24,492 nt of DNA from Penicillus capitatus (taxonomy: Eukaryota > Plantae > Chlorophyta): contig OZ287708.1 of the NCBI GenBank assembly GCA_965649825.1, positions 734,880 through 759,371 on the forward strand. The letters run 5' to 3'. The notes under the pieces were generated by a model. The model was not told the DNA's origin, searched no databases, and was given only the letters and a program-made list of their open reading frames with translations. Position 1 is the first letter of the stretch, and each line of letters starts with the position of its first letter. Below, in pieces: positions 1 to 23,599 of this stretch. The translations under genes were made by a program, and so were the position numbers.

Positions 1-639
1 ACTCACTCATCAGGCGGCAGAATGAGCTTAAGCCCAGTACCGCAAGGTGCACTGCGCAGACAGTTCGAAGAGGAGATCGTTCGTCTGGCGCACCTCTCTT
101 TAGAGCACGTCGCCTGCTGTAGACGACAAGCAACGACCCTCTGTTTTGCGACGGGCGATCGTTCTGTCGGCCGTTCTAAGTGACACCCTGCCGTTTCGAA
201 TCGACTGGCAAGCTGAAGGGGCGACCTACAGCCGCTCAAGAGTTCGGCACACCGCCGGGGCCCTTGTCTCTCGCTCCCCCGGAACAACTTCGTCGACGCA
301 GCCACCACTAATCTGTTCTCATCACCAGCACACCTGCGGAATCTCAGGCGCTGCGAGGACACCCGTCACTGGAGTGCTTGCCTCTCGACAGAAGCGCAAC
401 ACCGTAGTGTTACATACAGGGGCAGCAGCGCGACTCACGAGATCCTCGCCAGATGTCCATCCACGGTCCTGCGGCACGACGCGCTTGCTGCGCTTCGGAA
501 CCTGAGTCGACGGCGTCTGCTCCAGTAGTCGCCGTGTTCGTCTGTCAGCAAAGGCAACTGCAGCGAAGAGATCAGTGAATGCCAGAAATCTTCGGCCAAG
601 CAAATAGCGACGAGCTTGACGATGGCATGCGTTCTGCAG

Positions 640-896
640 AACCGACTACAATATTCGAAAAGGGTCGAGGATATAGCGATCGGTCGTCGAATAGTAACCC
701 GCACGCGATGAATGTAATAGAAACAGATTTCAACTGTTGACAGCGCATGTAGAAAGGTCATTCTTTACTTTAAAAAAGTGCGATGTCGAGCGAAACATTG
801 ATAGAACGGTAGTACGCGAAGGATAAGATGCACCTCGCAACAAAGCCAGCAGAGAAAGGGTAAGAAATTGCAACTTCACGAATAGAGAACTTGCGG
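640..896. other. Conserved, comparatively A/T-rich non-repetitive block abutting array A (leader-like)
   Basis: Alignable by eye to ~12580-12835 (e.g. AAAAAAGTGCGATGTCGAGCGAAACATTG vs AAAAAGCGAGATGTCAAGCGAAACGTTG). Ends in a 17-nt identical junction immediately before the first array unit. No reading frame is shared between the copies. Confidence 0.75.
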
Positions 897-3800
897 TCGG
901 CGACTTCGGTCTCCAATGATCGTCAACGCGGCAAGTAGACGACCGCCGCCTTGCATCCACGGCAAGGCGGCAAATAGACGACAGCCCCCTCGTATCCTCG
1001 ACGAGGTGCAGGTAAGTCAGCTGCAGCGTCCAGGCAGTAGGACGACATGTAAGGCGACCGCCGCCTCACATCCACAGCGAGGCGACAAGTAGACGACAGC
1101 CGCTTCCAATGAACTCCAGGCCGATAGATAAGACCACTTCGGCCTCCGGGCTTTAAGGTCGTAGGCTGTGCGACAGCCGCCTCGCATCCACGACGAAGCG
1201 GCAAGTAAGACGACTTCGGCTTCAATGCAGCAAATAAGACGAGAGCCGCCTCGCATCCAAGGCAAGGCGACAGGTAGATCGACTTCGGCCTCCGGTCTTC
1301 AATGTCGCAGGCAGTGCGACAGCAGTCTCGCATCCACGGCAAGGCGGCAAGTAGACGATAGCCGCCTCGTATCCTCGACGAGGCGGCGAGTAAGATGACT
1401 TCGGCCTCTGATCAACTCCAGGCCGACAGGTAAGAAGACCGCCGCCTTGCATCGACGGCAAGGCGGCGAGTAAGACGACTGCAGCGTTCAAGCAGCAGAG
1501 CAGCAGGTAAGACGAGAGCCGCCTCGCATTCATGACGAGGCAGCAAGTAGGTCCACTGCGGCCTTCAGTGATCTCTAGGTCAAGGCAGCAAGTAAAACGA
1601 CTTCGGCATCCGGGCTTCAACGTCGCAGGAAGTGCGACAGCCGCCTCGCATCTACGGCGAGGCGGCAGGTAGGTCGACTGCGGCATTCAGGCTGTAGAGC
1701 AGCAGGTAAGGCGGCCGCCGCCTTGCATCCACGGCAAGGCAGCAAGTAGACGACTGCCGCCTCCAATGAACTCCAGGTAATGACGGCAAGTTTGCCGACA
1801 GCCGCCTCGCATACATGACGAGGCAGCAGGTAGGACGACTTTGGTCTCCGGGCTTGAACGTCGCAGGAAGTGCGACGGCCGCCTCGTATCTACGGCGAGG
1901 CAGCAGGTAAGATGACTTCGGCATCCAAGTCGCAGGTAAGGCGACAGCCGCCTCGCATCCACGGCGAGGCGGCAAGTTTGCCGATATCCGCCATGCATCC
2001 ACGGCAAGCGGCGAGTAAGACGACAGCGACATCCAGGTCGCAGGTGGGACGACAGCGGCCTCCTGTTGTTTCCACGGAGGCAGGTCTCGCGAATGCCGCC
2101 TCGCATCCACGGGCGAGGCAGCAAATAGGCGACTGTCGCCTCCAATGATCTCAGCGGCGAGGCGGCAGGTAAAACGACAGCCGCCCCGAATACACGGCAA
2201 GGCGGCAGATGTGATGAGTTCGTCTCCGAGCATCCAGGTCGCCGGGATGGCGACAGCCGCCTCGCATCCACGGCGAGGCGGCAAGTTAGACGACATCCGC
2301 CTCCAGTTGTCTTGAGGAGGCAGGCATGACGACCGCAGCATCCGGGCATCGAGGCAGAAGGTATGACGAATGCCGCCTCGCTTCTACGGCGAAGCGGCAA
2401 GCATGTCCACTGCCGCCTCCAATGATCGTCAATGCGGCAGGTACAACGACTTCGGTCTCCGGGCTTCCAGGTCGCAGGAAGGCAACAGCCGCCGTGCATC
2501 CACGGCGAGACAGCAAGTTGCTCGACTTCTTCCGCAGATCAACTCCAGGCCGACAGGTAAGGAGACCGCCGCCTTGCATCGACGGCAAGGCGGCAAGTAG
2601 ACGACTGCCGCCTCACATCCTCAACGAGGCGGCAGGTAGGTCGACTGCGGCCTCCAGGCAGTAGAGCAGCAGGTAAGGAAGCCGCCGCCTCGCATTCACA
2701 ACAAGGCAGCTAGTTGGTCCACTGCGGGCTTCAATGAACTCCGGGCCGATAGATAAGGCGACTTCTTCTTCCGGGCTTCATTGTCGCAGGTAGTGCGACA
2801 GCCGCCTCGCGTCCACGGCGAGGCGGCAAGTAGGTCCACTGCAGCCTCCAGTTGTCTTCAATGAGGCAAGTATAGCGTCAGCCGCCTCGCATTCACAGCA
2901 AGGCAGCTAGTTGGTCCACTGCGGCATTCGGTGATCTCCAGGTCAAAGCGGCAAGTTTGCCGACAGCCGCATCGTATCCTGGACGAGGCAGCAGGTAAGA
3001 AGTCTTCGGCCTCCGGTCTTCAAGGTCGCAGGCTGTGCGACAGCCGCCTCGCAGCTATGGCGAGACAGCAGGTAAGACCACTTCGCCCTCCGGTCATCCA
3101 GGTCACAGGCAAGACGACCGCCGCCTCGCATCCACGGCAAGGCGGCAGGTAGATCGACTGCGGCATCTAGGCTGTAGAGCAGCAGGAAGACGACTCCGAC
3201 CTCAGATCAACTCCAGCTCGCAGGTTTGCCGACAGCTGCCTCGCATCCACAGCGAGGCAGCACTTAAGTCGACAGAGTCCTCCAGTAGTCTTTAGGACGA
3301 CAGGTAAGGCGACTGCCGCATTGCATCCACAGCGAGGCGGCAGGTAGATCGACTTCGGCCTCCTGTCTTCAATGTGGCAGGTAGGTCGACAGACTCCTCA
3401 AGGAGTCTTCAGGACGACAGGTAAGGCGACCGCCACCTCGCATCTCCGGCGAGGTGGCATTTAGGTCGACAGAGTCCACCAGTTCGCAGGTTTGCCGAAA
3501 GCCGCCTCGCATCCACGGCGAGACGGCGAGTAAGACGACTCCGACGTCTAGGCTTCCAGGTCAAGGCGGCAAGTAGGCGACTGCCGTCTCCAATGATCGT
3601 CAACGCAGCAGGTAAGGCGACAGCCGCCTCGCATCCACGACGAGGCAGCGGGTATGACGACTACGGCATCCAGGTCGCAGCCTATGCGACAGCCGCCTCG
3701 CATCCAAGGCAAGGCGGCAAGTTGACGACAGCCGCCTCGTATTCTCGACGAGGCAACAGGTAAGACGACTTCGGCTTTTGTTCTTAGAAGTCGCAGGTTG

Positions 3801-4384
3801 TGCGACAGCCGCCTCGCATCCACGGCGAGGCGGCAGGTATGACGACTTCGGTCTCCGGGCTTCCCAGGTCGCAGGTAGGTCGACCGCCGCCTCGTATCCA
3901 CGGCAAGGCGGCAAGTAGGACGACTGCGGCCTTCGGTGATCTCCAGCCAAGGCGGCAAGTAGGACGACTGCGGCCTTCGGTGATCTCCAGCCAAGGCGGC
4001 AAGTAGGTCGACTGCGCCATCCAGGAAGTAGATCAGCAAGTAGGTTGACAGCCGCCTCGCATCCACGGCGAGGCGGCAAGTAGGTTGACTGCTGCCTCAC
4101 ATTCACGACGTGGCGGCAGGTAAAACGACTTCGGCATCCGTGTCGCAGATAGTGCGACAGCCGCCTCGCATATCCGGCGAGGCGGGGCGTAAGACGACTG
4201 CTGCATCCAGGCAGTAGAGCAGCAGGTAAGGCGACCGCCGCCTCGCATCTATGGCGAGGCAGCAGGTAAGACCACTTCGCCCTCCGGTCATCCAGGTCGC
4301 AGGTTAGGCGACCGCCGCCTCGCATCCACGGCGAGGCGGCAGGTAAGTCTATAGACGCCTCCAGTAATCTCCAAGAAGTCGGCA
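897..4384. repeat. Mosaic tandem array A: core GCARGTARRNCGAC plus variable module, with roughly 40 hairpin units GCCGCCTCGC-ATCCACG-GCGAGGCGGC
   Basis: Read directly from the sequence. 10-bp inverted repeats with a 7-nt loop (e.g. 945-971, 1361-1387) are separated by recurring modules such as TTCGGCCTCCGGGCTTCAAGGTC, TGCGGCCTCCAGGCAGTAGAGCA, TCCAATGATCGTCAA and AGATCAACTCCAGGCCGA. Unit count is by eye. Confidence 0.95.
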
Positions 4385-5100
4385 GGTGGAAAGAGCTGCA
4401 GCCTCTAGTCAGTAGACGACAGGTAGATAGACTAGGCAGCCTCCAGTCAGCATACGGCAGGTGGAAAGAACTGCAGCTTCCAGTCAGTACGGCAGCATGT
4501 AGAGAAACTCGGCAGCTTTCGATGAGCAGACGGCATGTTAGGATACTCCAGTCTTGAGGCGGTAAGACAAGCAGGTAGGACACGGCAGCTCCGCACAGGA
4601 AGATCGACGGGTGGCATCCTCTGGACAGCAGAAAGCAGGTAAGACACGGCAGCTTCAAGCAGCAAGCCAACAGGCGGGATCCTCCGGGCAGCAATACAGT
4701 GAGTCGGACACTCCAGACTCTGTGCATCAAAACGCCAAATAGGACGTGGTAGCTCCAGGCAGCAGGTAAACAGACAGTCCAGCCTCCGGGCACCAAAAAT
4801 GTCAAGTCGAACGACGCCAGCAGCCATCCCAGGTAAAACAGAGAGTGCGTGGGACAGTCCAGCCTCCGGGCAGTAAAACGACAGATCAGGACCAAAACAC
4901 CTCAGTACATCAAAACAGAAAATAATACGACCACAGGCCTCTCCACACAGGAAACACCAATCAGGGAAACGGCAGATCTCATATATGGCAAGGCAGCAGG
5001 TAAGACAGCAGCATCCAGTCAGCAAGGCAGCAGGTAAGACACAACGGCTTCTGGACAGCAAAACGAGAAATCGGGCATTCCAGATCGGAAACTCGAGCCG
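4385..5100. repeat. Degenerate gene-proximal sub-array A (units like CAGCCTCCGGGCAGCAGGTAAGACAC, no hairpin)
   Basis: Recurring CAGCCTCCGGGCA / CAGCTCCAGGCA / CAGGTAAGACAC motifs. Shares the CAGGTAAGAC core with the main array and shares longer words with 15690-16690 (e.g. GGATCCTCCGGGCAGCAATACAGTGAGTCGGACACTC). Confidence 0.85.
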
Positions 5101-5169
5101 CTACGTAAGAAAAGCTAACACACAGCCATCCACAACAGAGCGAAGGTGGAATGGCGGAAACATCAAGAA

Positions 5170-5252
5170 AAGAAAACAGCCCTAGATCTTTTTGTATTTT
5201 TAATTTTGCAGTCGGAAAGAAAACAGCACCATGAACGAGAAGAAAGATGCCC
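5170..5252 (-). terminator. Possible 3' end / polyadenylation region of orphan gene A
   Basis: The minus strand downstream of the stop is U-rich, then carries an A-rich tract with ATTAAA (plus-strand TTTAAT at 5199-5204). Copy B has an equivalent A-rich tract. Inference only. Confidence 0.35.
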
Positions 5253-6448
5253 TTAGGCAGACCAATCTTCAACATAAACCTACACCACAAGCACATTAGC
5301 AGAGAGAAGGATACAAAAAGTGACTTACACATTGGCCCGATAAAAAGAAAAGCCGCTCTGGAATTGCGGGGCCCACGGGCACACACTGGCCGGAGAGAAA
5401 AAACGGCCGGGGAGGGATGCCAAGGGGACCTACTGAGAAGATGAAGGGGCGTAGGGGGATTGGAGGTGGAGACGAGCGAAGGGAAAAGACAGAAGTGCGC
5501 ACAGGAAAGGGGGGCGGGAAGAAAGGAAAGGAAAACTTAAACAACCGTGAAGGGATGGTAGGAGGAGGGGAGGCTGGTATACAGAAGACTTGCGGGCGAA
5601 CGGGGAAGAGTGGTGGCCTGGTTGGCTGGGTGGTGGGAGGAGACATCGTCGCGGTTGGCTGCGGGGAGGAACATGACGACCACTCCATGTCGGCTGAACA
5701 GGGCAGCTGAGATGATGCCGGAGAAGGCGCGGCAGGTTGGGCATGAGGTGGACCGGCTGGCGGCGCAGGCGACCACGCCATGGGCGGCGGCGAGCTCGTC
5801 TGGGTTGCTGCTGGCTGTGGTGGGGACGACTGGCCCGGAGGAGGATCGGCTGAAGCTTCGGCTTGCGGCGGCGGCGGCAATGATGTCTGCGGCTGGGAAG
5901 TTGCAGACGGCGGTGCGGGGCGCGCCGGAGGCGGCGGAGCAGCAGGCTGGCCCTGTTGGGCCAACCGCGCTCTCCTGTCCTCGGAGGACAGGACCCTCGC
6001 CCGCCGCACGGGCCGAGCCTGAGCGGTTTGGTCCCTATTGGGACCAAACCGGACAGGAGGGGTCTGCTCATCGAGCACCTGTTGACCCCTGAGAGCGGTC
6101 GTCTGGGTCTTGAGGTCCCAGAACAACCGCTCTCTCTCGGCCTCGGCCATCCCCTCGAAGGCCCTGGGCGGTCTGTTGCCCAGGACCTCCGCCAGTGTCA
6201 CCTGAGCAAACCTACAAGACACACAGAGGTGAGAGACCTGTCGACGAACAGGTCAACCGCGCGGTCTCGCAAGCAAGTGACCGCATGCGTTCGGACTGCG
6301 TGCTGGACGCATGCATGCCCACAGCAAGCGTCCACCGCCGCAGTCGAGGAGCTCCGAGGCGCGCGACTCGTCGAAGCGTGGGGCAGAGGACTTACGGCTT
6401 GCCAGGATAGCCGTAGTCATCTTCGGTGCTCATTCTGGCGTCGGCCAT
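5253..6448 (-). CDS. Three-exon orphan gene, copy A, 320 aa: MADARMSTEDDYGYPGKP|FAQVTLAEVLGNRPPRAFEG...Pro-rich linker...IPERLFFLSGQC|VYVEDWSA*
   Basis: Exons 6448-6396 (53 nt), 6211-5329 (883 nt) and 5279-5253 (27 nt) sum to 963 nt, in frame. Intron 1 is 6395-6212 (184 nt; GTAAGT...CTCAC...TCTTGTAG). Intron 2 is 5328-5280 (49 nt; GTAAGT...CTAAT...GTGTAG). The same structure occurs in copy B, with mostly synonymous differences. No recognisable family. Confidence 0.88.
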
Positions 6449-6533
6449 CGTCTTGAAAGTCGGTCGCCAAGGAAAGCAGCAAAGGTCGCAGAAGGCAGAA
6501 GCAGAACTCGGAAACTCGAGTGCTGAAGGCTCA

Positions 6534-6573
6534 GCGACAGGACCTTTATAGGCCGCCTCGGTTGCCGAGCGCG
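6534..6573 (-). promoter_or_regulatory. TATA-containing core promoter of orphan gene A
   Basis: Minus-strand TATAAAGG (TATAAA at 6550-6545), about 100 nt upstream of the ATG, lies within a 40-nt stretch identical in copy B while the flanks differ. Confidence 0.75.
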
Positions 6574-6770
6574 ACCTGCTGGTGGCGGCTGCTAACTGTC
6601 GCCGTTTGGCGGCACCTGCATCCGCCGACGGACAAGGGAATCGTCGCCAGACGTCCAGAAACGCAGAATTCTTTGACCGGAGTACGCGCCGCGAACGGGA
6701 GAGCGCTTCTGGATACTTTGCTAGGAGTTTTACAGGGGAAGCTCTTTACAGTTTGTCGCCATTCTACTCA

Positions 6771-7200
6771 CTGAGTGTAACGCGCATGCGTTCTCTGCGG
6801 CCTCTCCGACGCGATTCTCCGAACGGCGAACCGTCCGAAGTCAGCTCCGCGTTGCCCGGGCAGAGGAACGAGGCGGACGTTCTCGTTGGCAGGATCGGCA
6901 CGGACTCTACGTCGAGACGGCTGTCTATTGCGGGCGTCTCCGTCGCAAACGCCGTCGAGGGGACGTTCTGCGCGGTGTAACGCGAGTCGGTTTGAGGAGT
7001 TGCCGTTGGCCCTAACTCCCTCGAACATGGAAGGCGGAACAGAACGGCCGGCCATCTGCGACAACCAGACGGCCGCGGAGACGCCGTTTCAGTTCCCGTT
7101 CGCGCACAGCGTCGAGGGAGTGTCTTTGAAGACGCCGGTCGCTCCGATCAATAAAGTCTGTCGCGTTTTGCGTCTGCTGTGCAGGACTGTCGTTCTGTCT
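6771..7200. other. Highly conserved upstream block A, function unknown
   Basis: Ungapped and roughly 90% identical by eye to 18302-18640, then decaying. GTGTAACGC occurs twice exactly 200 nt apart in both copies. A short minus-strand ORF (6768-7064) is shared, with a mixed synonymous/non-synonymous signal. Confidence 0.7.
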
Positions 7201-11233: not shown

Positions 11234-12046
11234 TGAGTGCCATACACAGAATGGAATCAAGGATAGCAGGCCGGAGAGGAAGTTCAGTTGTTCAGTCAGT
11301 TTCTGAAGAATTTGCGCTTTTCTTTACTCAAGTCTGAACTTCGAGGCGCGCATCGCAGACGCGTTTCGGATCCCGAACGAAAGGGAAATCGCATCTTCGC
11401 TTTTGGTCGCGCTTCGAGAACAAGAGAGTCGACATTTGGAGCGAGAAGAGTGTGAATCGGCAGATGATCTGCAACGATGGTCAGGGGCCTTGAGCGTCTG
11501 CTTTCTGCCAAGAGTGGCCATCTTAGCGACGCCATGATGGCAAAGCTCATGTCAGTGTGGCAAGAGAACGCAAGTATGGACTGTCGACTCAATGAGAGGA
11601 CGTTCGAGCGACTCGCCGAAAGCGAGACCTGGGCCCGTCGCATTGTCGCCGCTGTTCGCAGATTGTCGACAGCTCTCGAGGCAGCGTTCGTCCCCGACAA
11701 CCACTCGGAGGTCACGCGCTCGCTTCTCCGGAAAGGGAAGAGACTGTACCGCTTTGTGCAGATCCTGAATCGCGTGCTGCAGTCCTCTGTCTCCAGACGT
11801 GAAGCCTACTTTATGAAGAAGACGTTTTGTCAGTTAGGAGGCCTGCAGTTCGACAGAGACATCCGACTTCCACTTTCGCACTTCTCCGAGATCTATCAGA
11901 TCTCTGTCCGAGAGAGACTCGCACGTCTGACGCAGATGGCTACCATTTTGTGCTTCGAGAGCGTGGAGCAGATACTGGACTACCGGGAGATAAAGGAGAG
12001 AGCATCAACTGGCGATCGAGTCCAGTCGAAATCGAAACCATTCTGA
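11234..12046 (+). pseudogene. Frameshifted remnant of an unidentified helical protein gene
   Basis: Protein-like segments in successive frames (MSAIHRMESR...FFTQV / FEARIADAFRIPNEREIASSLLVALRE...DLQRW / VRGLERLLSAK...QMATILCFESVEQILDYREI). No family recognised. Confidence 0.3.
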
Positions 12047-12579
12047 AACTGCGCCGCGATTATAACGAGGCCGACATCCCAGCCCTGCTGCTTTGACAAT
12101 GCTTTCTGTCCCGTTTCTCGTGCTTGATGACGACGCGAGTCGACGTCAAGAGATCGATCGAACGTTGCAGCGCCTGGAGGAACTGCGGGCACAACAAGAA
12201 CAGAATACCAAAGCCTGTCACGATAGGTCGGTGTACACACGACAGCTGTCTCGGCCATTTAGGTCCCTGTGAATGCGGCCGGATTCTTTGAAGTCCGGTG
12301 CTGCAAGCAGAACGTGTTTTCGTCGATCTTGGCCGTCAATACGTGGCAGAGTGCTCGGCAGATCAAGCCGAGGCCATTCCTACACGCAGCCGACATTTCC
12401 CTGCGTTTCCCTCTCTGTCGTGAATCCGGCAGGAATGACTAGCTCGCAACAGAGCCATCGGAGAAAACATGCATATCTAAAGAAGCCGATGCGCGCCAAG
12501 AGAGTGGAGCAGCCGTCCAAGCCATGCGTCTTCCCTTAGAAGATGGTAACGAGCTTCACGATGAGACCCGCCTGAACAA

Positions 12580-12835
12580 CGCCCACAGCAATAGTCGGGA
12601 ATGCGTCGACATCTAGCGTTCCGTCGCCGGCTCGTAACTCGCTCTCGACGAATGTTAAAGAAATGGAACTCGACTGTTTACAACGCTTGTAAAAAATGTC
12701 ATTTTTTCTTCAAAAAGCGAGATGTCAAGCGAAACGTTGTCAAAAAGTGATTCGCGAAGGATAGAATGTATAATCACCACAGAGTCTGTAGAGAAAGAGT
12801 AAGAAAGTGCAATACCGTGAATAGAGAACTTGCGG
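12580..12835. other. Conserved A/T-richer leader-like block abutting array B
   Basis: Homologous to 640-896. Ends in GAATAGAGAACTTGCGG (12819-12835) directly before the first hairpin unit. Confidence 0.75.
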
Positions 12836-15689
12836 CAGCGACAGCCGCCGCGCATCCACAGAGAGGCGGCAAGTAAAATATGACTCTGGCCTTTGGTCTT
12901 CAAGGTCGCAGTCTGCGCGACAGCCGCCTCGCTGTGGATGCGAGGCGGCAGGTAGATCGACTTCGGGCTCCGGACATCCAGGTCGCAGTAGTGCGACAGC
13001 CGCCTCGCATTTACGGCGAGGCGGCAGGTATCACGACTACGGCCTCAGATCAACTCCAGGCCGACAGGTAAGGCGACTACGGCCTTCAACGGCCTCCATG
13101 TCGCAGGAAGGCGACAGCCGCCTCGCATCCACGGCGAGGCGGCAGGTAAGACGACTTCGGCATCCAGCTCGCAGGTAAGAAGAGAGCCGCCTCGCATCCA
13201 CAACGAGGCAGCAAATAGGCGACTGTCGCCTCCAATGATCTCAGCGGCGAGGCGGCAAGTAGGTTGACAGCTGCCTCACATTCACGACGTGGCGGCAGGT
13301 AAAACGACTTCGGCATCCGTGTCGCAGATAGTGCGACAGCCGCCTCGCATATCCGGCGAGGCGGGGCGTAAGACGACTGCTGCATCCAGGCAGTAGAGCA
13401 GCAGGTAAGGCGACCGCCGCCTCGCATTCACGGCGAGGCGGCAAGTAGGACGACTGCGGCATCTAGACGTAAAGGTCGCAGGTGGATCGATAGCCGCCTT
13501 GCATCCACAGCGAGGCGGCAAGTAGGACGACTGCGGCATCTAGACGTAAAGGTCGCAGGTTGATCGATAGCCGCCTTGCATCCAGGGCGAGGAGGCAGGT
13601 ATGACGACTGCGACCCCGATCGGCGAGGCCGCAGTTTTAGCGACAGCCGCCTCGCATCATCCTTTGTAAGGCGGTAGGTATGTCGACAGACTTCTCCAGG
13701 AGTCTTCAGGGCGGCAGGTAGGACGAGAGCCGCCTCGCATATGCGCCAAGCGGCAGGTAAGACGAGAACCGCCTCGTATTCTCGACGAGGCGGCAGGTAG
13801 ATCGACTTCGGCATGCTTTAAGGTCGCAGGCTGTGCGACAGCCGCCTCGTATCCTCGACGAGGCAGCAGGTAAGACGACTTCGGCTTTTGGGCTTAGAAG
13901 TCGCAGGTTGTGCGACAGCCGCCTCGCATCCACGGCGAGGAGGCAGGTATGACGACAGCGGCATCCAGTTGTCCTTGAGGAGGCAGGTATGACGACTGCA
14001 GCATCCGGGCATCCAGACAGCAGGTACGACGACGGCCGCCTCGCATCCACGGCGAGGCAGCAAATAAGCGACTGTCGCCTCCAATGATCTCAACGGCGAT
14101 GCGGCAGGTAAAACGACAGCCGCCCCGAATACACGGCAAGGCGGCAGATGTGATGAGTTCGTCTCCGAGCATCCAAGTCGCAGGTAGTGCGACAGCCGCC
14201 TCGCATCCACGGCGAGGCAGCAGGTAGGTCGACAGACTCCCCCAGGAGTCTTCAGGACGACAGGTAAGGCGACCGCCGCCTCGCATCCACGACGAGGCAG
14301 CGGGTAAGATGACTCCGAACTCAGATCAACTCCAGGCCGACAGGTAAGGCGACTACGGCCTTCAACGGCCTCCAGGTCGCAGGCAGTGCGACAGCCGCCT
14401 TGCATCCACAGCAAGGCGGCAGGTAAAACGACTTCGGCATCCAGTAGTCTTCATGACGACAGGTAAGGCGACAGCCGCCTCGCATCCAAGGCAAGGCGGC
14501 AAGTAGACGACAGCCGCCTCGTATCCTCGACGAGGCAGCAGGTAAGACGACTTCGGCTTTTGGGCTTAGAAGTCGCAGTTTGTGCGACAGCCGCCTCGCA
14601 TCCAAGGCAAGGCGGCAGGTATGACGACTTCGGTCTCCGGGCTTCAAGATCGCACGCAGGCAGTGCGACAGCCGCCTCGCATCCACGGCGAGGCGGCGAG
14701 TAAGACGACTGCAGCGTTCAGGCAGCAGATCAGCAGGTTAGGCGGCGGCTGCCTTGCATTCACAGCAAGGCAGCAAGTAGGTCCACTGCGGCCTTCGGGC
14801 TTCCCAGGTCGCAGGTAGGTCGACCGCCGCCTTACATTCACAGCAAGGCGGCCAGTAGACGACAGGCTCCTCGTATTCTCGACGAGGCGGCAGGTAAGTC
14901 AGTTGCAGCGTCCAGGCAGTAGGGCGACAGGTAAGGCGACCTCCGCCTCGCATCCTGAGCGAGGCGGCTAGTGAGTCGACTGCGGCCTCCAGTTGTCTTC
15001 AGGGCGGCAGGTAGGACGAGAGCCGCCTCGCATATACGCCAAGCGGCAGGTAAGACGAGAGCCGCCTCGCATATACGCCAAGCGGCAGGTAAGACGAGAA
15101 CCGCCTCGCATTCACGGCGAGGCGGCAGGTAGATCGACTTCGGCTTTTGGGCATCCAGGTCGCAGGCATTGCGACAGCCGCCTCGCATCCATAGCAAGGC
15201 GGCAGGTAAGTCGATAGACGCCTTCAGTAATCTCTAAGGCGAGGCAGCAAGCAGGCGACTGCCGCCTCGCATATACGGCAATGGGGCAGGTAGGACGAGG
15301 GCCGCCTCCAGTGATCTCCAAGTCAACGCAGCAAGTTGGCGACAGCCGCCTCGCATACACGACGAGGCGGCAGGCAAGACGACTACGGCATCGGATGATC
15401 GTCAAAGCGGCAGGTAGGACGAGAGCCGCCTTGCATCCACGACAAGACGGCAGGTAGGACGACTGATGTATCCGGGCATTGATGTCTCAGATATTGCGAC
15501 AGCCGCCTTGCATCCACGGCAAGGCGGCAGGCAAGACGACTACGGCATCGGATGATCGTCAAAGCGGCAGGTAGGACGAGAGCCGCCTTGCATCCACGGC
15601 AAGACGGCAGGTAGGACGACTGATGTATCCGGGCATTGATGTCTCAGATATTGCGACAGCCGCCATGCATTTACGGCAAGGCGGCGGCA
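12836..15689. repeat. Mosaic hairpin array B (roughly 35-40 hairpin units)
   Basis: Same unit vocabulary as array A in a different order. Internal tandem duplications have periods of 77 nt (13441/13518), 39 nt (~15012-15090) and 157 nt (15365/15522). Confidence 0.95.
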
Positions 15690-16690
15690 GGTAGATAGAC
15701 ACAGTAGCCTCCTGGCATCAAAAACGCCGAATCGGACGTGGCAGCCTCCCAGGCGTCAGAACTCTAGCTTCCAGTCAGCAAGGCATCAGGTAAATAGACG
15801 CGGCAGCCTCCGGACAGCAGACGGCAGGTCAGGGCACTCCAGCTTCCAGGTGGCAATCCGACAGGTAGGGCGACAGCGGCCCCCATCCACAGCGAGGCCG
15901 CAGGTAGAACGAGATCGACTGCGGCCTTCATCTACATTACGCAGCAGGTAGACTGACTAGGCATCCTCCAGTTAGCAGACGGTAGGTTTGGACACTCAAA
16001 CCTCCAGGTGGCAGGACAACCAGTCCGGACACGACAGCTCCGCGCGGCAAGACCAGCAGGTTGGATCCTCCGGGCAGCAAAAAGCAAGACACGGCAGCTC
16101 CAAGCAGCAAGACTGCAGATGGGATCCTCCGGGCAGCAATACAGTGAGTCGGACACTCAAGCCTCCGGGCATCAAAACGCCAAATCGGAAGTGGCAGCTC
16201 CAGGCAGTAGGTAGAAAGAACTGCAGCCTCCAGACGGCAAGGAAGCAGGTAGAAACACATGGCAGCCCTCGGGGCAGCAGAAAACATGTTAGGACACTCC
16301 AGTCTCCAGGTGGCAAGACAAGCAGATCGGATTCGGCAGTTCCAAGCAGTAAGACAACAGGCAGGGTTCTTCCGGGCAGCTAAATAGGTAAAAGGCACTC
16401 AAGCCTCCGGGCAGCAGGCAGACTGACTAGGCATCCTCCAGTCAGCAGACGGTAAGTTTGGACAGTCCAGCCTCCAGATGGCAAGACAAGCAGGTAAGAC
16501 ACGGCAGCTCCAAGCATGTAAAACAGCAGATGGGATCCTCCGGGCAGCTAAACAGGTGAACAGGATGGGCAGCCTCCAGTCAGCAGAAATGACAAGTAGA
16601 ACGACGCCAGCAGCCATCCGAGGTAAAACAAAGAATGAAACACTCCAGCCTTAGGGCGAGCAAAACAGCAGATCAGGCAACGACAGCCTC
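15690..16690. repeat. Degenerate gene-proximal sub-array B
   Basis: Recurring CAGCCTCCGGGCAGC, GGACACTCCAG, CAGACTGACTAGGCATCCTCCAG and GGATCCTCCGGGCAGC words; homologous to 4385-5100 but longer. Confidence 0.85.
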
Positions 16691-16835
16691 CGTGTAAAAA
16701 CAGTTGACACAGCCATCCACAGCAAAGCGTAGGTGGAATGGCGTAAACAGTAACAAAAAAACAGCCCTACCTCTTTTTGTTTTTTTTTCAAATTATTCAG
16801 CTCAAAAAAGAAAACAGCGTCCGAAAAAAAGGCCC

Positions 16836-17997
16836 TTAGGCAGACCAATCGTTGATATAAACCTACACAAAAAGCACGTTAACAGAGAGAAAGAATAGAA
16901 GAATGACTTACACATTCGCCCGACAAAAAGAAAAGGCGCTCAGGAATTGCAGGACCCAGGCTAAGACACTCGCCAGATAGGAAATACGGTCTAGGCGGGA
17001 TGCCAGGATACCTGACCGAAAAGATGAAGGGGCGAGGGGGGATTGGAGATGGGCAGGGAAGGCAAAACTTAGAGGTGCGTGCAGGAAAGAGAGGTGGGAA
17101 AAAAGGGAAGGAAAATTTAAAAAGGCGCGAAGGGATCGTAGGAGGAGGGGACGCGGGTATGCAAAAGACCTGTGGACGAGGGGGGAAGAGCGGCGGCTTG
17201 ATGGGCTGGGCGGTGGGAGGGGACATGATCGCTGTAGGCTGCGAGGAGGGACAGGATGACCAGTCCATGGCGGCTACGCACGGCGGCTGCGATGATGCCA
17301 GAGGTGGCGCGTGCGACCACTCCATCTGCGGCGGCCCGGCCGGCTGGGATTGAGGAGGAGCGTCTGCCGCCACGGCTGGCGGTGCTCTCGGCACTGAGGC
17401 TGCTGGTATCTCGGATGAAGCCGGAGGTGGGCACGGCTGCGGCGAAGATGTCGGCTGCTGAGATGCTGCAGGCGGTGGTGATGCAGGCTGTGCGGGAGGC
17501 GGAGGAGCAGCAGGCTGGCCCTGTTGGGCCAGCCGCGCTCTCCTGTCCTCCGAGGACAGGACTCTGGCCCGCCGCATAGGCCGAGCCTGTGCGGTTTGGT
17601 CCCTATTGGGACCAAACCGGACAGGAGGGGTCTGCTCATCGAGCACCTGTTGACCCCTGAGAGCGGTCGTCTGGGTCTTGAGGTCCCAGAACAACCGCTC
17701 TCTCTCGGCCTCGGCCATCCCCTCGAAGGCCCTGGGCGGTCTGTTGCCCAGGACCTCCGCCAGTGTTACCTGCGCAAACCTACAAGACACACAAGGGTCA
17801 GAGATGTCTCGAAGAGCAGACGCGCCGCGCGCTACGGGGCTTCTCGACTGCAGCCGGACGCATGCGTGCGCATGAAAAGCGTTCTGGCCGCAGTCGAGGA
17901 GCTCCGTAGCGCGCGGCGCGTCGAAACATGGCCAGTGGACTTACGGTCGTCCCGGATATCCGTAATCATCCTCGGTGGTCATGTACTCGTCAGCCAT
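16836..17997 (-). CDS. Three-exon orphan gene, copy B, 315 aa: MADEYMTTEDDYGYPGRP|FAQVTLAEVLGNRPPRAFEG...IPERLFFLSGEC|VYINDWSA*
   Basis: Exons 17997-17945 (53 nt), 17779-16912 (868 nt) and 16862-16836 (27 nt) sum to 948 nt, in frame. Intron 1 is 17944-17780 (165 nt; GTAAGT...CTGAC...TCTTGTAG). Intron 2 is 16911-16863 (49 nt; GTAAGT...TTAAC...GTGTAG). Intron positions and phases match copy A. Confidence 0.88.
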
Positions 17998-18063
17998 TGT
18001 CTTCGTCGTTTGCGCTCGGAGAAAAAACAGAAGAAACTCGAAACTCGAGTGCAGAAGGTCTGC

Positions 18064-18103
18064 GCGACAGGACCTTTATAGGCCGCCTCGGTTGCCGAGC
18101 GCG
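18064..18103 (-). promoter_or_regulatory. TATA-containing core promoter of orphan gene B
   Basis: TATAAA at 18080-18075 on the minus strand, about 83 nt upstream of the ATG; identical to 6534-6573. Confidence 0.75.
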
Positions 18104-18301
18104 GCCTGCGGGTGGCGGCTGGGAACCGTGGCCGTTCGGCGGCGCCTGCATGCGCCGCCGGACAAAGAAACGGCCGCCAGACATCCGGAAACGCAGGATG
18201 CTGCCGTCGGGATGCGCGACGCGAACGGGAGAGCGCTTCTAGAAGCTTTGCAAGGAGTTTTACAGGCAGGATTCTCTACAATTTGTTCGGCATGGACCTC
18301 T

Positions 18302-18730
18302 CTGAGTGTAACGCGCATGCGTTCTCTGCGGCCTCTCAGACGCGATTCTGCGAACGGCGAACCGTCCGAAGTCAGCTCTGCGTTGCCCGGGCAGAGGAAC
18401 GAGGCGGACGTTCTCGTCGGCAGGATCGGCACGGACTCTACGTCGAGACGGCCGTCTGTTTCGAGCGTCTCCGTCGCAAACGCCGTCGAGGGGACGTTCT
18501 GCGCGGTGTAACGCATGTCGGTTTGAGGAGTTGCCGTTGCCCCTAACTCCCTCGAACATGGAAGGCGGAACAGAACGGCCGGCCTTCTGCGACAACCAGA
18601 CGGCTGCGGAGTCGCCGTTTCAGTTTGCGCTCGCGCAAAGCGTCGGTAGACTGTTTCGGAAGTCGCCGGTCGCTCTGGCAAACGAAGTTCTATCGCGTCT
18701 CACATCGGCCTGACAGACTCGTCTGTCTGT
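18302..18730. other. Highly conserved upstream block B
   Basis: Homolog of 6771-7200; GTGTAACGC at 18306 and 18506. Confidence 0.7.
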
Positions 18731-22991: not shown

Positions 22992-23339
22992 CTACTTTGG
23001 CCGAGGGCCCATGAAAAAGGGCCGGACGCAGAACAGCGACATAGCTCCGCAGAGGATAGCAAACACTCCAGCAGGAAACACATATCCGTTTCCTTGGTTG
23101 CGCGAAGCCATGAACACGGTCAGCGCAGTAGAGACCACCAGCAAGAGCAATGTTTCTTCCTCTCTTTCATTGCTTCCCGGCACGTAGCAGAGCAGACTGG
23201 TGTGCGCAGGAAGATTGTGCACGGCGCCAGAACCCACACTGCCTCCGAACGAGCCATTCCAGCCTTCAGACGCTAAACCGATGAATCCGCCTAACGCCAG
23301 CAGCACCGAATAGAGATACGTCAAACAGTATTCGTACAT
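22992..23339 (-). CDS. TMEM14/FAX-family small membrane protein, intronless, probably degenerate (115 aa)
   Basis: MYEYCLTYLYSVLLALGGFIGLASEGWNGSFGGSVGSG...STALTVFMASR...VFPAGVFAILCGAMSLF matches the plant/algal-type TMEM14 pattern (MHDFCFTIPYG.LL..GG.IG...KGS..SL.GG.G.G...MPAG). The ATG is at 23339, inside ORF 22992-23537. Polar and Pro residues in an expected TM helix (AVHNLPAHTS) suggest decay. Confidence 0.7.
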   Translation of the reverse strand: MYEYCLTYLYSVLLALGGFIGLASEGWNGSFGGSVGSGAVHNLPAHTSLLCYVPGSNEREEETLLLLVVSTALTVFMASRNQGNGYVFPAGVFAILCGAMSLFCVRPFFMGPRPK

Positions 23340-23599
23340 CCTTTGCTCCACTTGGACACCGAATGAACTCTGCCTCCGTTTGGAGACGCCGTAAACCGAC
23401 CGTCGAAGCTGTCGTCGGGCAACGAAGCCGGTACGCCTCGAACTCCTCATCAGTGGGCGTCGATCTGCTGCGAGATTCGCACCGAGGAGCTCGTTAGAGG
23501 CGTCCCGACAGATCTCTCGAGCAGAAACAGACCACACGATTTACAGAGGTCTCTCTTCGAGGAGTCATCGCGGTCCTATTGCCTTCGGAAGTCCTTAAC

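Follow-up and report, generated by a model that had tools for sequence, protein, structure and literature searches.

The human minisatellites of the minisatellite variant repeat (MVR) type described by Jeffreys consist of GC-rich units of tens of bases, arranged in arrays of a few kilobases in which variants are interspersed in variable order, and such arrays change length rapidly by unequal exchange or conversion and carry decayed units at the array edge. All of these properties recur in two tandem arrays that lie in a 24,492-nt stretch of contig OZ287708.1 (positions 734,880 to 759,371; hereafter the window), and the class to which they belong, minisatellites with higher-order repeats, is a known one. 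What is unusual, and unlike MVR loci, is that a strong 10-bp hairpin alternates almost strictly with the variant units and that, throughout three diverged subfamilies of a narrow gene family, each array-bearing member has its array 3' of the gene in a fixed orientation; hints of constraint at the RNA level are a further unusual feature. That the locus is a gene-linked eukaryotic minisatellite composed of dimers of a hairpin unit (H) and a variant unit (X), evolving by unequal exchange, is well supported; the explanation as a whole, in which it possibly also provides a transcribed platform of hairpins, is rather probable.

Two other repeat systems offer partial parallels. Alpha satellite likewise consists of monomers that diverged from one ancestor and were amplified in blocks as dimers and multimers (77, 116, 125, 147 and 157 nt in the present case); unlike alpha satellite, however, the arrays described here are short (0.9-5 kb) and dispersed at more than 15 genic sites, and are neither centromeric nor heterochromatic. 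In Trypanosoma brucei, each member of the variant surface glycoprotein (VSG) multigene family is accompanied by an imperfect tandem array of 70-bp repeats, which lies upstream of the gene, is AT/TAA-rich and is free of hairpins. Like the VSG repeats, the present arrays may be a substrate for recombination or gene conversion, although such a role is only hinted at here by the chimeric array of one related locus (L008, described below). A full-text literature search for a described analogue returned general tandem-repeat papers only.

Monomers were called in both arrays by dynamic-programming segmentation on a shared 3' motif, GCARGTARRNCGAC. This procedure yielded 161 contiguous head-to-tail units of 29-45 nt (40 nt, n = 76; 37 nt, n = 27; followed by 39, 29 and 44/45 nt) in arrays of 3.5 kb (array 1) and 2.8 kb (array 2), dimensions within the size range of minisatellites. 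The H unit carries the hairpin GCCGCCTCGC-ATCCACG-GCGAGGCGGC, with a 10-bp stem, a 7-nt loop and a folding energy of -23 kcal/mol (z = -4.3), and accounts for 76 of the 161 units. Its 27-mer occurs 47 times at up to three mismatches, with 0 copies expected, and 46 of these lie on the plus strand. H and non-H units alternate at 67 of the 88 junctions in array 1, compared with 44.1 ± 4.7 after permutation, and at 61 of 71 in array 2, compared with 36 ± 4.2; this degree of alternation was reached in 0 of 20,000 permutations (P < 5e-5). The effective repeat is the H + X dimer of ~77 nt, and Tandem Repeats Finder reported overlapping periods of 39-40, 77, 84, 108, 116, 157 and 161 nt at 928-4495 and 12903-15689.

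Clustering of the unit bodies at 33% edit distance produced 21 clusters including H, among which 16 contain at least two copies, 12 contain at least three and 13 are common to both arrays. Of the 20 non-H clusters, 15 recur and 12 are present in both arrays, and the two also have short series of unit types in common, for example H-I-M-N-H and H-H-G-H-A-H. A preliminary description of this DNA had proposed a minisatellite with interspersed variant repeats in which a hairpin unit alternates with variant units, and both proposals are borne out, the first by the recurring clusters and multi-monomer periods and the second by the permutation test on segmented monomers. The limits that it gave for array 1 (897-4384) fit the homogeneous core, beyond which degenerate units run on to ~5010. 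It was also correct that a small vocabulary is reused within and between arrays, although its count of fewer than ~10 recurring types was too low. The claim that every unit carries the motif was overstated: GCARGTARRNCGAC occurs 86 times at no more than one mismatch, always on the plus strand and against 0.2 copies expected by chance, but only about half of the units have a clean copy and the remainder have a degenerate version with two to five mismatches. In several variant types the 3' motif is located in the loop of GTCGC..GCGAC hairpins, and after H it is located in unpaired linkers.

An alternation of this kind invites comparison with arrays of clustered regularly interspaced short palindromic repeats (CRISPR), in which a palindromic repeat of ~30-40 nt alternates with segments of similar length and a conserved 'leader' is present at one end, like the flank found here. 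As the preliminary description had already indicated, the likeness is superficial. The 'spacers' recur, with 12 non-H types found in both arrays, and they are homologous to the repeat and have its 3' motif; the surrounding genes are eukaryotic and spliced; no cas-like Pfam hit was obtained in the flanks; and the exact 27-nt hairpin was not found in IMG/VR, GTDB genomes or JGI metagenomes. A CRISPR array was rejected on these grounds. Bacterial repetitive extragenic palindromes (REP) and the bacterial interspersed mosaic elements (BIMEs) that contain them also combine palindromic units with a small linker vocabulary in a grammar-like mosaic. BIMEs, however, are bacterial, contain few units and alternate in orientation, whereas the 70-90 units of each array run in one direction in a eukaryotic context (a single strand carries 46 of the 47 H units and all 86 motif copies), and this class was rejected as well.

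Cruciforms, protein-binding sites and processing sites for small RNAs were put forward in the preliminary description as hypothetical roles of the hairpins. In microRNA (miRNA) precursors the stems span ~20-30 bp and the mature sequences are conserved, and a 10-bp stem is too short for a precursor of the Dicer or Drosha type. The regular spacing of the hairpins and the constant 3' motif of the units would suit a cluster of precursors cut at the hairpins to release miRNA-like, small interfering RNA-like or CRISPR RNA-like products. This explanation is highly improbable, however, given 10-bp stems and 40-nt units that fall below the size of a Dicer- or Drosha-type precursor, a eukaryotic context with no cas-like protein, and 'spacers' that are themselves repeats. 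Across the whole window, no Rfam match was obtained at the gathering score or at E ≤ 1, no tRNA was found by ARAGORN and no long open reading frame (ORF) was found. Known structured RNA families (small nucleolar RNA, miRNA, spliced leader RNA and riboswitches) were rejected on the absence of Rfam matches over the window, and an miRNA-type cluster was rejected because the H stem of 10 bp with its 7-nt loop falls short of the at least ~20 bp needed for a 21-24-nt duplex. Tandem miRNA clusters such as miR-430 resemble the arrays in presenting many tandem hairpins of few types in recurring order; unlike them, the arrays have 10-bp stems and no Rfam match. One paper that the literature search brought up in this connection is PMC10417697.

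The genomic setting of the arrays was revealed by self-comparison of the window, in which each array proved to lie within a duplicated block of ~6.5 kb (610-7166 matching 12549-18698), and by alignment of the non-array parts of this block, which uncovered a gene on the minus strand (gene 1; Table 1). Its two introns follow the GT-AG rule and measure 184 nt (first) and 49 nt (second); exon 1 encodes MADARMSTEDDYGYPGKP, and exon 3 encodes VYVEDWSA followed by a stop codon. Wherever a paralogue includes the boundary between exons 2 and 3, intron 2 and the early exon 3 stop are conserved. Because the coding sequence (CDS) stops in exon 3, the array lies downstream of the stop codon on the strand of the gene, with degenerate monomers beginning ~240 nt and the homogeneous core ~860 nt from the stop of gene 1 (in general, arrays start 0.2-0.9 kb downstream). 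The presence of spliced genes, together with the matches of neighboring ORFs in the window and its sister loci to COG4_C, TMEM14, HSP70, NSUN2, a protein kinase and a Ty3-like reverse transcriptase/integrase, indicates a eukaryotic source.

The position of the stop codon bears directly on the idea that the array encodes a repetitive C-terminal extension of its minus-strand neighbor. The minus strand of the arrays is indeed poor in stop codons, with ORFs of 139-431 aa in the window and 848 aa in the related locus L005. The CDS nevertheless ends at the conserved exon 3 stop upstream of the array in all paralogues, most of the array of L004_b has no called ORF, and the 848-aa ORF arises from a 147-nt (49-codon) repeat at 99% identity. 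Since unit lengths of 40, 37, 29 and 44 nt are not multiples of three and the order of units varies, the reading frame would change at nearly every unit. A coding tandem repeat is scarcely credible, and was rejected on these grounds, ORFs being broken in all frames.

The link between arrays and genes extends beyond the window. Eight loci (L001-L008) were fetched by means of paralogous proteins and one array-derived ORF, and all 15 arrays found (in the window, L001-L005, L007 and L008) are the immediate 3' neighbors of a family gene, to which their motif strand is antisense; a truncated paralogue in L006 has no detectable array. Subfamily A comprises the window, L001, L003, L007 and L008 and carries the 10-bp H hairpin. 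Subfamilies B and C (L002, L004 and L005) have units of ~40 nt such as ..GACGGCCTCCACTGGCCGCCAGACGTCAGGTAGG, with shorter and different stems (GGCTGCC/GGCAGCC, GCCGCC/GGCGGC or GACGGCC/GGCCGTC) and loops of TCCACT or TCTTTT. Hairpins that retain a TCCAC loop on differing stems are present in subfamilies A and B. In a k-mer survey of 12 arrays, GCCGCC was the only hexamer dense on the motif strand in all of them (5.5-21 per kb versus a background of 0.64), followed by (C)GGCCTCC(A), and CAGGTA, the core of GCARGTARRNCGAC, was dense in subfamily A only, occurring in about one unit in three in B and C.

GCCGCC, GGCCTCCA and a TCCAC hairpin loop are common to all subfamilies and imply a common ancestral unit. 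To judge from the sequences, all units, 'spacers' included, look like descendants of one ~40-nt unit, with H as a derived, lengthened palindrome. In the ancestral unit, a TCCAC loop would have been enclosed by a short palindrome, accompanied by GCCGCC and CCTCCA and with CAGGTAGG after it, and one monomer type in subfamily A would then have gained the 10-bp stem that defines H. Neither this apparent descent of all unit types from one ~40-nt unit nor the restriction of GCARGTARRNCGAC to one subfamily formed part of the preliminary description, which also had not recognized the DNA as eukaryotic or placed the array 3' of an opposite-strand spliced gene across a whole gene family.

The instability of the arrays was measured between paralogous and sister copies. 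Array lengths range from 0.9 to 5 kb across paralogues; a 125-nt repeat recurs ~16-17 times in L004, and the 147-nt repeat of L005 is present in 14.8 copies. Monomers have their closest relative in the other array about as frequently as in the array to which they belong (65 versus 67), and the gene-side edge is decayed in each array. L001, a sister copy located on the same contig of 88 kb, matches the window in its flanks at 94-99.6% identity, yet both of its arrays are ~1 kb shorter, as estimated from donor-to-flank distances (3340 versus 4355 nt and 3073 versus 4071 nt). L008, which represents a sister genome on a contig of 45x coverage, contains a single module with a chimeric array (L008 7958-11261 compared with window 15552-16171 and 1-2675), in which the proximal part matches array 2 (96%) and the distal part matches array 1 (90-95%), placing exchange or deletion breakpoints inside arrays. 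We strongly infer from these comparisons that the arrays turn over fast by unequal exchange or slippage in blocks of two to four monomers, together with exchange between arrays. Such block-wise exchange would cause a small vocabulary of variants to recur in variable order within and between arrays.

Turnover of this kind is also what a neutral or selfish minisatellite would display, one that has no function, is copied with every duplication of the module and persists by its own dynamics. Its palindromes would be a consequence of the greater tendency of hairpin-forming units to slip and amplify, and intrastrand template switching would restore their perfection. The divergence between paralogues in unit sequence, array length and higher-order repeats, the mosaic order of monomers and the truncated paralogue without a detectable array agree with this explanation, which has a tentative but real claim. 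It does not readily account for the same place and orientation of the array at all 15 array-bearing modules in three diverged subfamilies, nor for a TCCAC loop that is kept while stems differ between subfamilies.

Other features of the arrays could be taken to indicate binding sites in duplex DNA. The GCCGCC core resembles the plant GCC-box, bound by AP2/ERF factors; at 5-21 copies per kb it would recruit some DNA-binding protein, and an array of such putative sites could act as an enhancer, insulator, termination zone or recombination hotspot between tandem genes. Its standing as the sole hexamer dense in all 12 arrays is consistent with this suggestion, as are the recombination breakpoints inside arrays, the patches of 95-100% identity between gene copies that suggest gene conversion, and the location of the array, which has the family gene on one side and on the other the next gene, in many cases a same-strand TMEM14-like ORF. 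The enrichment of GCCGCC would be equally expected from shared GC-rich ancestry, however, and sites in duplex DNA have no need for a hairpin, for a conserved loop orientation or for the asymmetry of G.U type described below, so that an explanation of this sort appears improbable.

The constraint on the hairpin was examined in 131-149 distinct H variants gathered from the window and the subfamily A loci. The hairpin noted in the preliminary description is real, and its stems are more conserved than the rest of the unit, deviating from the consensus at 7.5% of positions, compared with 15.9% elsewhere (ratio ~0.5). Watson-Crick pairs make up 87.6% of stem cells, a value above those of all 500 column shuffles (mean 85.9%), and pairing falls to 20-54% when the partner is shifted by one to three columns. 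Covariation between C-G and T-A was detected at pair 8 (p = 0.007) and pair 10 (p = 0.002; Fisher), and 21 H variants contain a compensated T-A pair, although counts of this kind do not represent independent events because the units are related by amplification. The orientation of the loop is kept in 236 of the 237 hairpins across all loci. The single exception (Table 1), in which the loop is reverse-complemented, is the signature of a DNA-level hairpin or template-switch event, and an event of that nature is what the neutral explanation invokes; the stem/non-stem rate ratio, the 236:1 loop orientation and the strand asymmetry of mismatches speak against it.

This asymmetry distinguishes the two strands. 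Stem mismatches on the motif strand are A.C in 111 cases and G.T in 19, so that the stems pair at 96.4% when read as gene-sense RNA with G.U allowed, compared with 89.2% on the motif strand. When the three dominant positions are omitted, the A.C:G.T ratio is still 36:9, compared with a ratio of G>A to C>T of 1.5:1 outside the stems (p = 0.004). Comparison with strand-specific dinucleotide shuffles, evaluated per 120 nt, revealed that arrays fold better than shuffled sequence (mean z about -1 to -3), while non-array controls are near 0. For subfamily C, three of four arrays display a clear excess on the gene-sense strand alone (z of about -0.8 to -1.8, versus -0.1 to -0.3 on the motif strand).

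The stem mismatches therefore fit the strand opposite to the one required by another proposal, namely a noncoding RNA transcribed from the motif strand. Such an RNA would start in the distal 'leader', run convergently with the gene and present ~90 consensus 5' splice sites (GCAG|GTAAGA), and could act as a decoy for the U1 small nuclear ribonucleoprotein, in nuclear retention or in antisense regulation. The 86 near-perfect copies of GCARGTARRNCGAC, all on the plus strand, the exposure of the motif in unpaired linkers or hairpin loops and the conservation of the distal flank would suit such an RNA, but CAGGTA is not dense in subfamilies B and C, and we regard the proposal as very improbable. 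On the gene-sense strand, the same flank contains a pyrimidine-rich tract followed by CAG; the splice-site-like signals of this flank are legible in both orientations, so that transcription in either direction would be compatible with them.

Within the favored explanation of a gene-linked minisatellite, the conservation of stems, the compensatory changes and the 96% pairing as gene-sense RNA suggest, short of proof, a hairpin platform transcribed as part of a 3' untranslated region (UTR). The array would form part of a long 3' UTR, or of a 3' tail of the gene transcript, in which hairpins with GUGGAU-type loops would be arranged as beads on a string, separated by pyrimidine-rich CUUACCUG linkers. 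These linkers match the 5' end of U1 snRNA in sequence and are complementary to 5' splice sites. The structure as a whole might be a platform for an RNA-binding factor that governs the stability, localization or 3'-end formation of the family mRNAs. We hold only tentatively the possibility that the array and the gene are transcribed together and that maintenance of the hairpins operates on the RNA, the array being a multivalent platform in the 3' UTR. A more specific version, in which the arrays are a transcribed and selected part of the mRNA, forming a 3-4-kb 3' tail of 40-90 hairpins with a GUGGA(U) loop and CUUACCUG linkers, a co-evolving scaffold rebuilt by unequal exchange, seems rather unlikely.

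Several observations weigh against such a platform. A self-perpetuating neutral satellite would likewise travel with every gene duplicate, and compensatory changes can also arise by hairpin-templated correction at the DNA level. The asymmetry of G.U type derives largely from three widespread variants, each possibly a single event amplified by unit duplication, and the general bias of the motif strand toward G>A over C>T (1.5:1 outside stems) contributes to it. Non-H units have weaker stems of 5-7 bp, and single variant units fold no better than shuffled sequence (z of +0.3 to -1.9), a lack of individual structure that also agrees with neutrality; for the same reason, the claim that all units are hairpins was dropped. 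Finally, transcription through the array, and its strand, are hypothetical, as all relatives come from one ENA metagenome assembly, ERZ25074695.

The two outcomes differ in their significance. If the hairpins are a by-product of slippage, the locus is a clean case of a palindromic monomer that orders a minisatellite into a strict hairpin/variant dimer, a useful but ordinary finding, and it illustrates how arrays mediate rearrangement of a tandem gene family. If the hairpins act in gene-sense RNA, each family member would carry a long, fast-evolving, structured 3'-UTR array, a case that could shed light on the origin of multivalent RNA platforms from tandem repeats, and a transcribed tail in particular would represent a new type of repeat-encoded post-transcriptional device, in an essentially unsampled eukaryote.

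Table 1. Coordinates of the arrays, genes and other features within the window.
Feature	Position	Strand	Description
Array 1 core	945..4395	+	89 monomers; H hairpin units (40) alternate with variants; neighboring gene on minus strand
Array 1, degenerate proximal (gene-side) monomers	4396..5010	+	~38 nt each, ..GCAGCCTCCAGTCAGCAGACGGCAGGTAGA..; like the decayed edge at 15701-16680
Array 1 distal flank	610..944	+	Conserved with 12549-12882 and with subfamily A sister loci
Array 2 core	12883..15700	+	72 monomers, 36 of them H units
Array 2, degenerate proximal monomers	15701..16680	+	
Sole H unit with reverse-complemented loop	12923..12949	+	Stem kept; loop TGTGGAT instead of ATCCACA; 1 of 237
Gene 1	5253..6448	-	CDS exons 6448-6396, 6211-5329 and 5279-5253; 320 aa, in frame
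Gene 2, paralogue of gene 1	16836..17997	-	Exons ~17997-17945, 17779-16912 and 16862-16836
Upstream region of gene 1	6500..7166	.	Conserved with 18030-18698, 96% over 6786-7090; part of the duplicated module
Conserved 3'-UTR element GCCATTCCACC..GTGGATGGC	5125..5155	-	Between stop codon and array; z = -1.95
TMEM14-like ORF	22992-23537	-	Pfam E = 2.5e-9; within the repeated block
COG4 C-terminal-like ORF	11477-12046	+	E = 1.6e-15; within the repeated block

The region between the stop codon and the array contains further conserved features. In addition to an A-rich tract, it includes the GCCATTCCACC..GTGGATGGC element listed in Table 1, which is found downstream of modules in all three subfamilies and has the motif (A)TCCAC/GTGGA(T) in common with the H loop. 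Across the paralogue 3' regions, this element is conserved in sequence and exhibits no covariation. The 3' UTRs of subfamilies B and C contain an extra perfect hairpin of 7-9 bp in the A-rich tract, between stop codon and array on the gene-sense strand (at ~20600 in L002, ~3400 and 11150 in L005 and ~10530 in L006). Examples of this hairpin are GTCACACTTTGAAAAGTGTGAC and TCTCACACC..GTGTGAGA, and its stems differ compensatorily between paralogues; it could be a 3'-end processing signal.

Patches of 95-100% identity are present in the two gene copies of the window, at 5988-6225 and 6786-7090 versus 17556-17793 and 18317-18620, and the surrounding sequence is 50-80% identical. As judged from identity levels, these patches suggest recent gene conversion of two blocks, the start of exon 2 and an upstream block corresponding to the promoter or 5' UTR.

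The protein encoded by gene 1 has no relative in Pfam or PDB. Family members consist of a conserved N-terminal region of ~85 aa, a variable middle region that is rich in P, Q and S and contains MEWS motifs, and C-terminal repeats of the IPPRPFIF type, and the protein is for the most part proline-rich and probably disordered. Between the three subfamilies, paralogues are ~50-60% identical. A word-indexed search of 5.8 billion proteins returned 16 relatives, all in ERZ25074695 and on contigs of up to 1.6 Mb, and when the 100 conserved N-terminal residues were used in a full HMMER scan of 1.84 billion representatives, 27 hits were obtained, of which 19 were below 1e-10; the family is accordingly narrow, with about 20-27 relatives in that set. 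A short part of the N-terminal region is matched by several long proteins (P0048, P0053, P0054 and P0057; 730-3622 aa), with 6-13 separate stretches of similarity; a motif within this region of the family may recur as a repeat in other proteins.

Among the neighboring ORFs, a 445-aa NSUN2-like ORF on a sister contig has two relatives, the best named one being from Caulerpa lentillifera at 49%, and TMEM14-like ORFs are found again 2-3 kb downstream of arrays in L001, L003, L007 and L008; the TMEM14-like and COG4-like ORFs may be either intact genes or fragments copied by duplication. In sister copies, the two ends of the window adjoin each other, and the sequence runs from 982 to 1 and then directly from 24492 to 18776 (97.6% and 99.6% identity in L001; junctions at 15385/15386 in L001 and 12114/12115 in L008). 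The window thus corresponds to a single period, ~24.5 kb in length, within a larger tandem repeat that the 88-kb ENA contig carries, and two gene and array modules, together with the TMEM14-like and COG4_C-like ORFs, are present in every period. In L008, ORFs for a reverse transcriptase and integrase of the Ty3/gypsy type (15345-17600) interrupt a flank that is continuous in the window (21440/21455). The contigs that carry the family fall into two coverage classes, 7-9x and 36-45x, a pattern suggestive of two related genomes within one metagenome, whether of strains, species or haplotypes.

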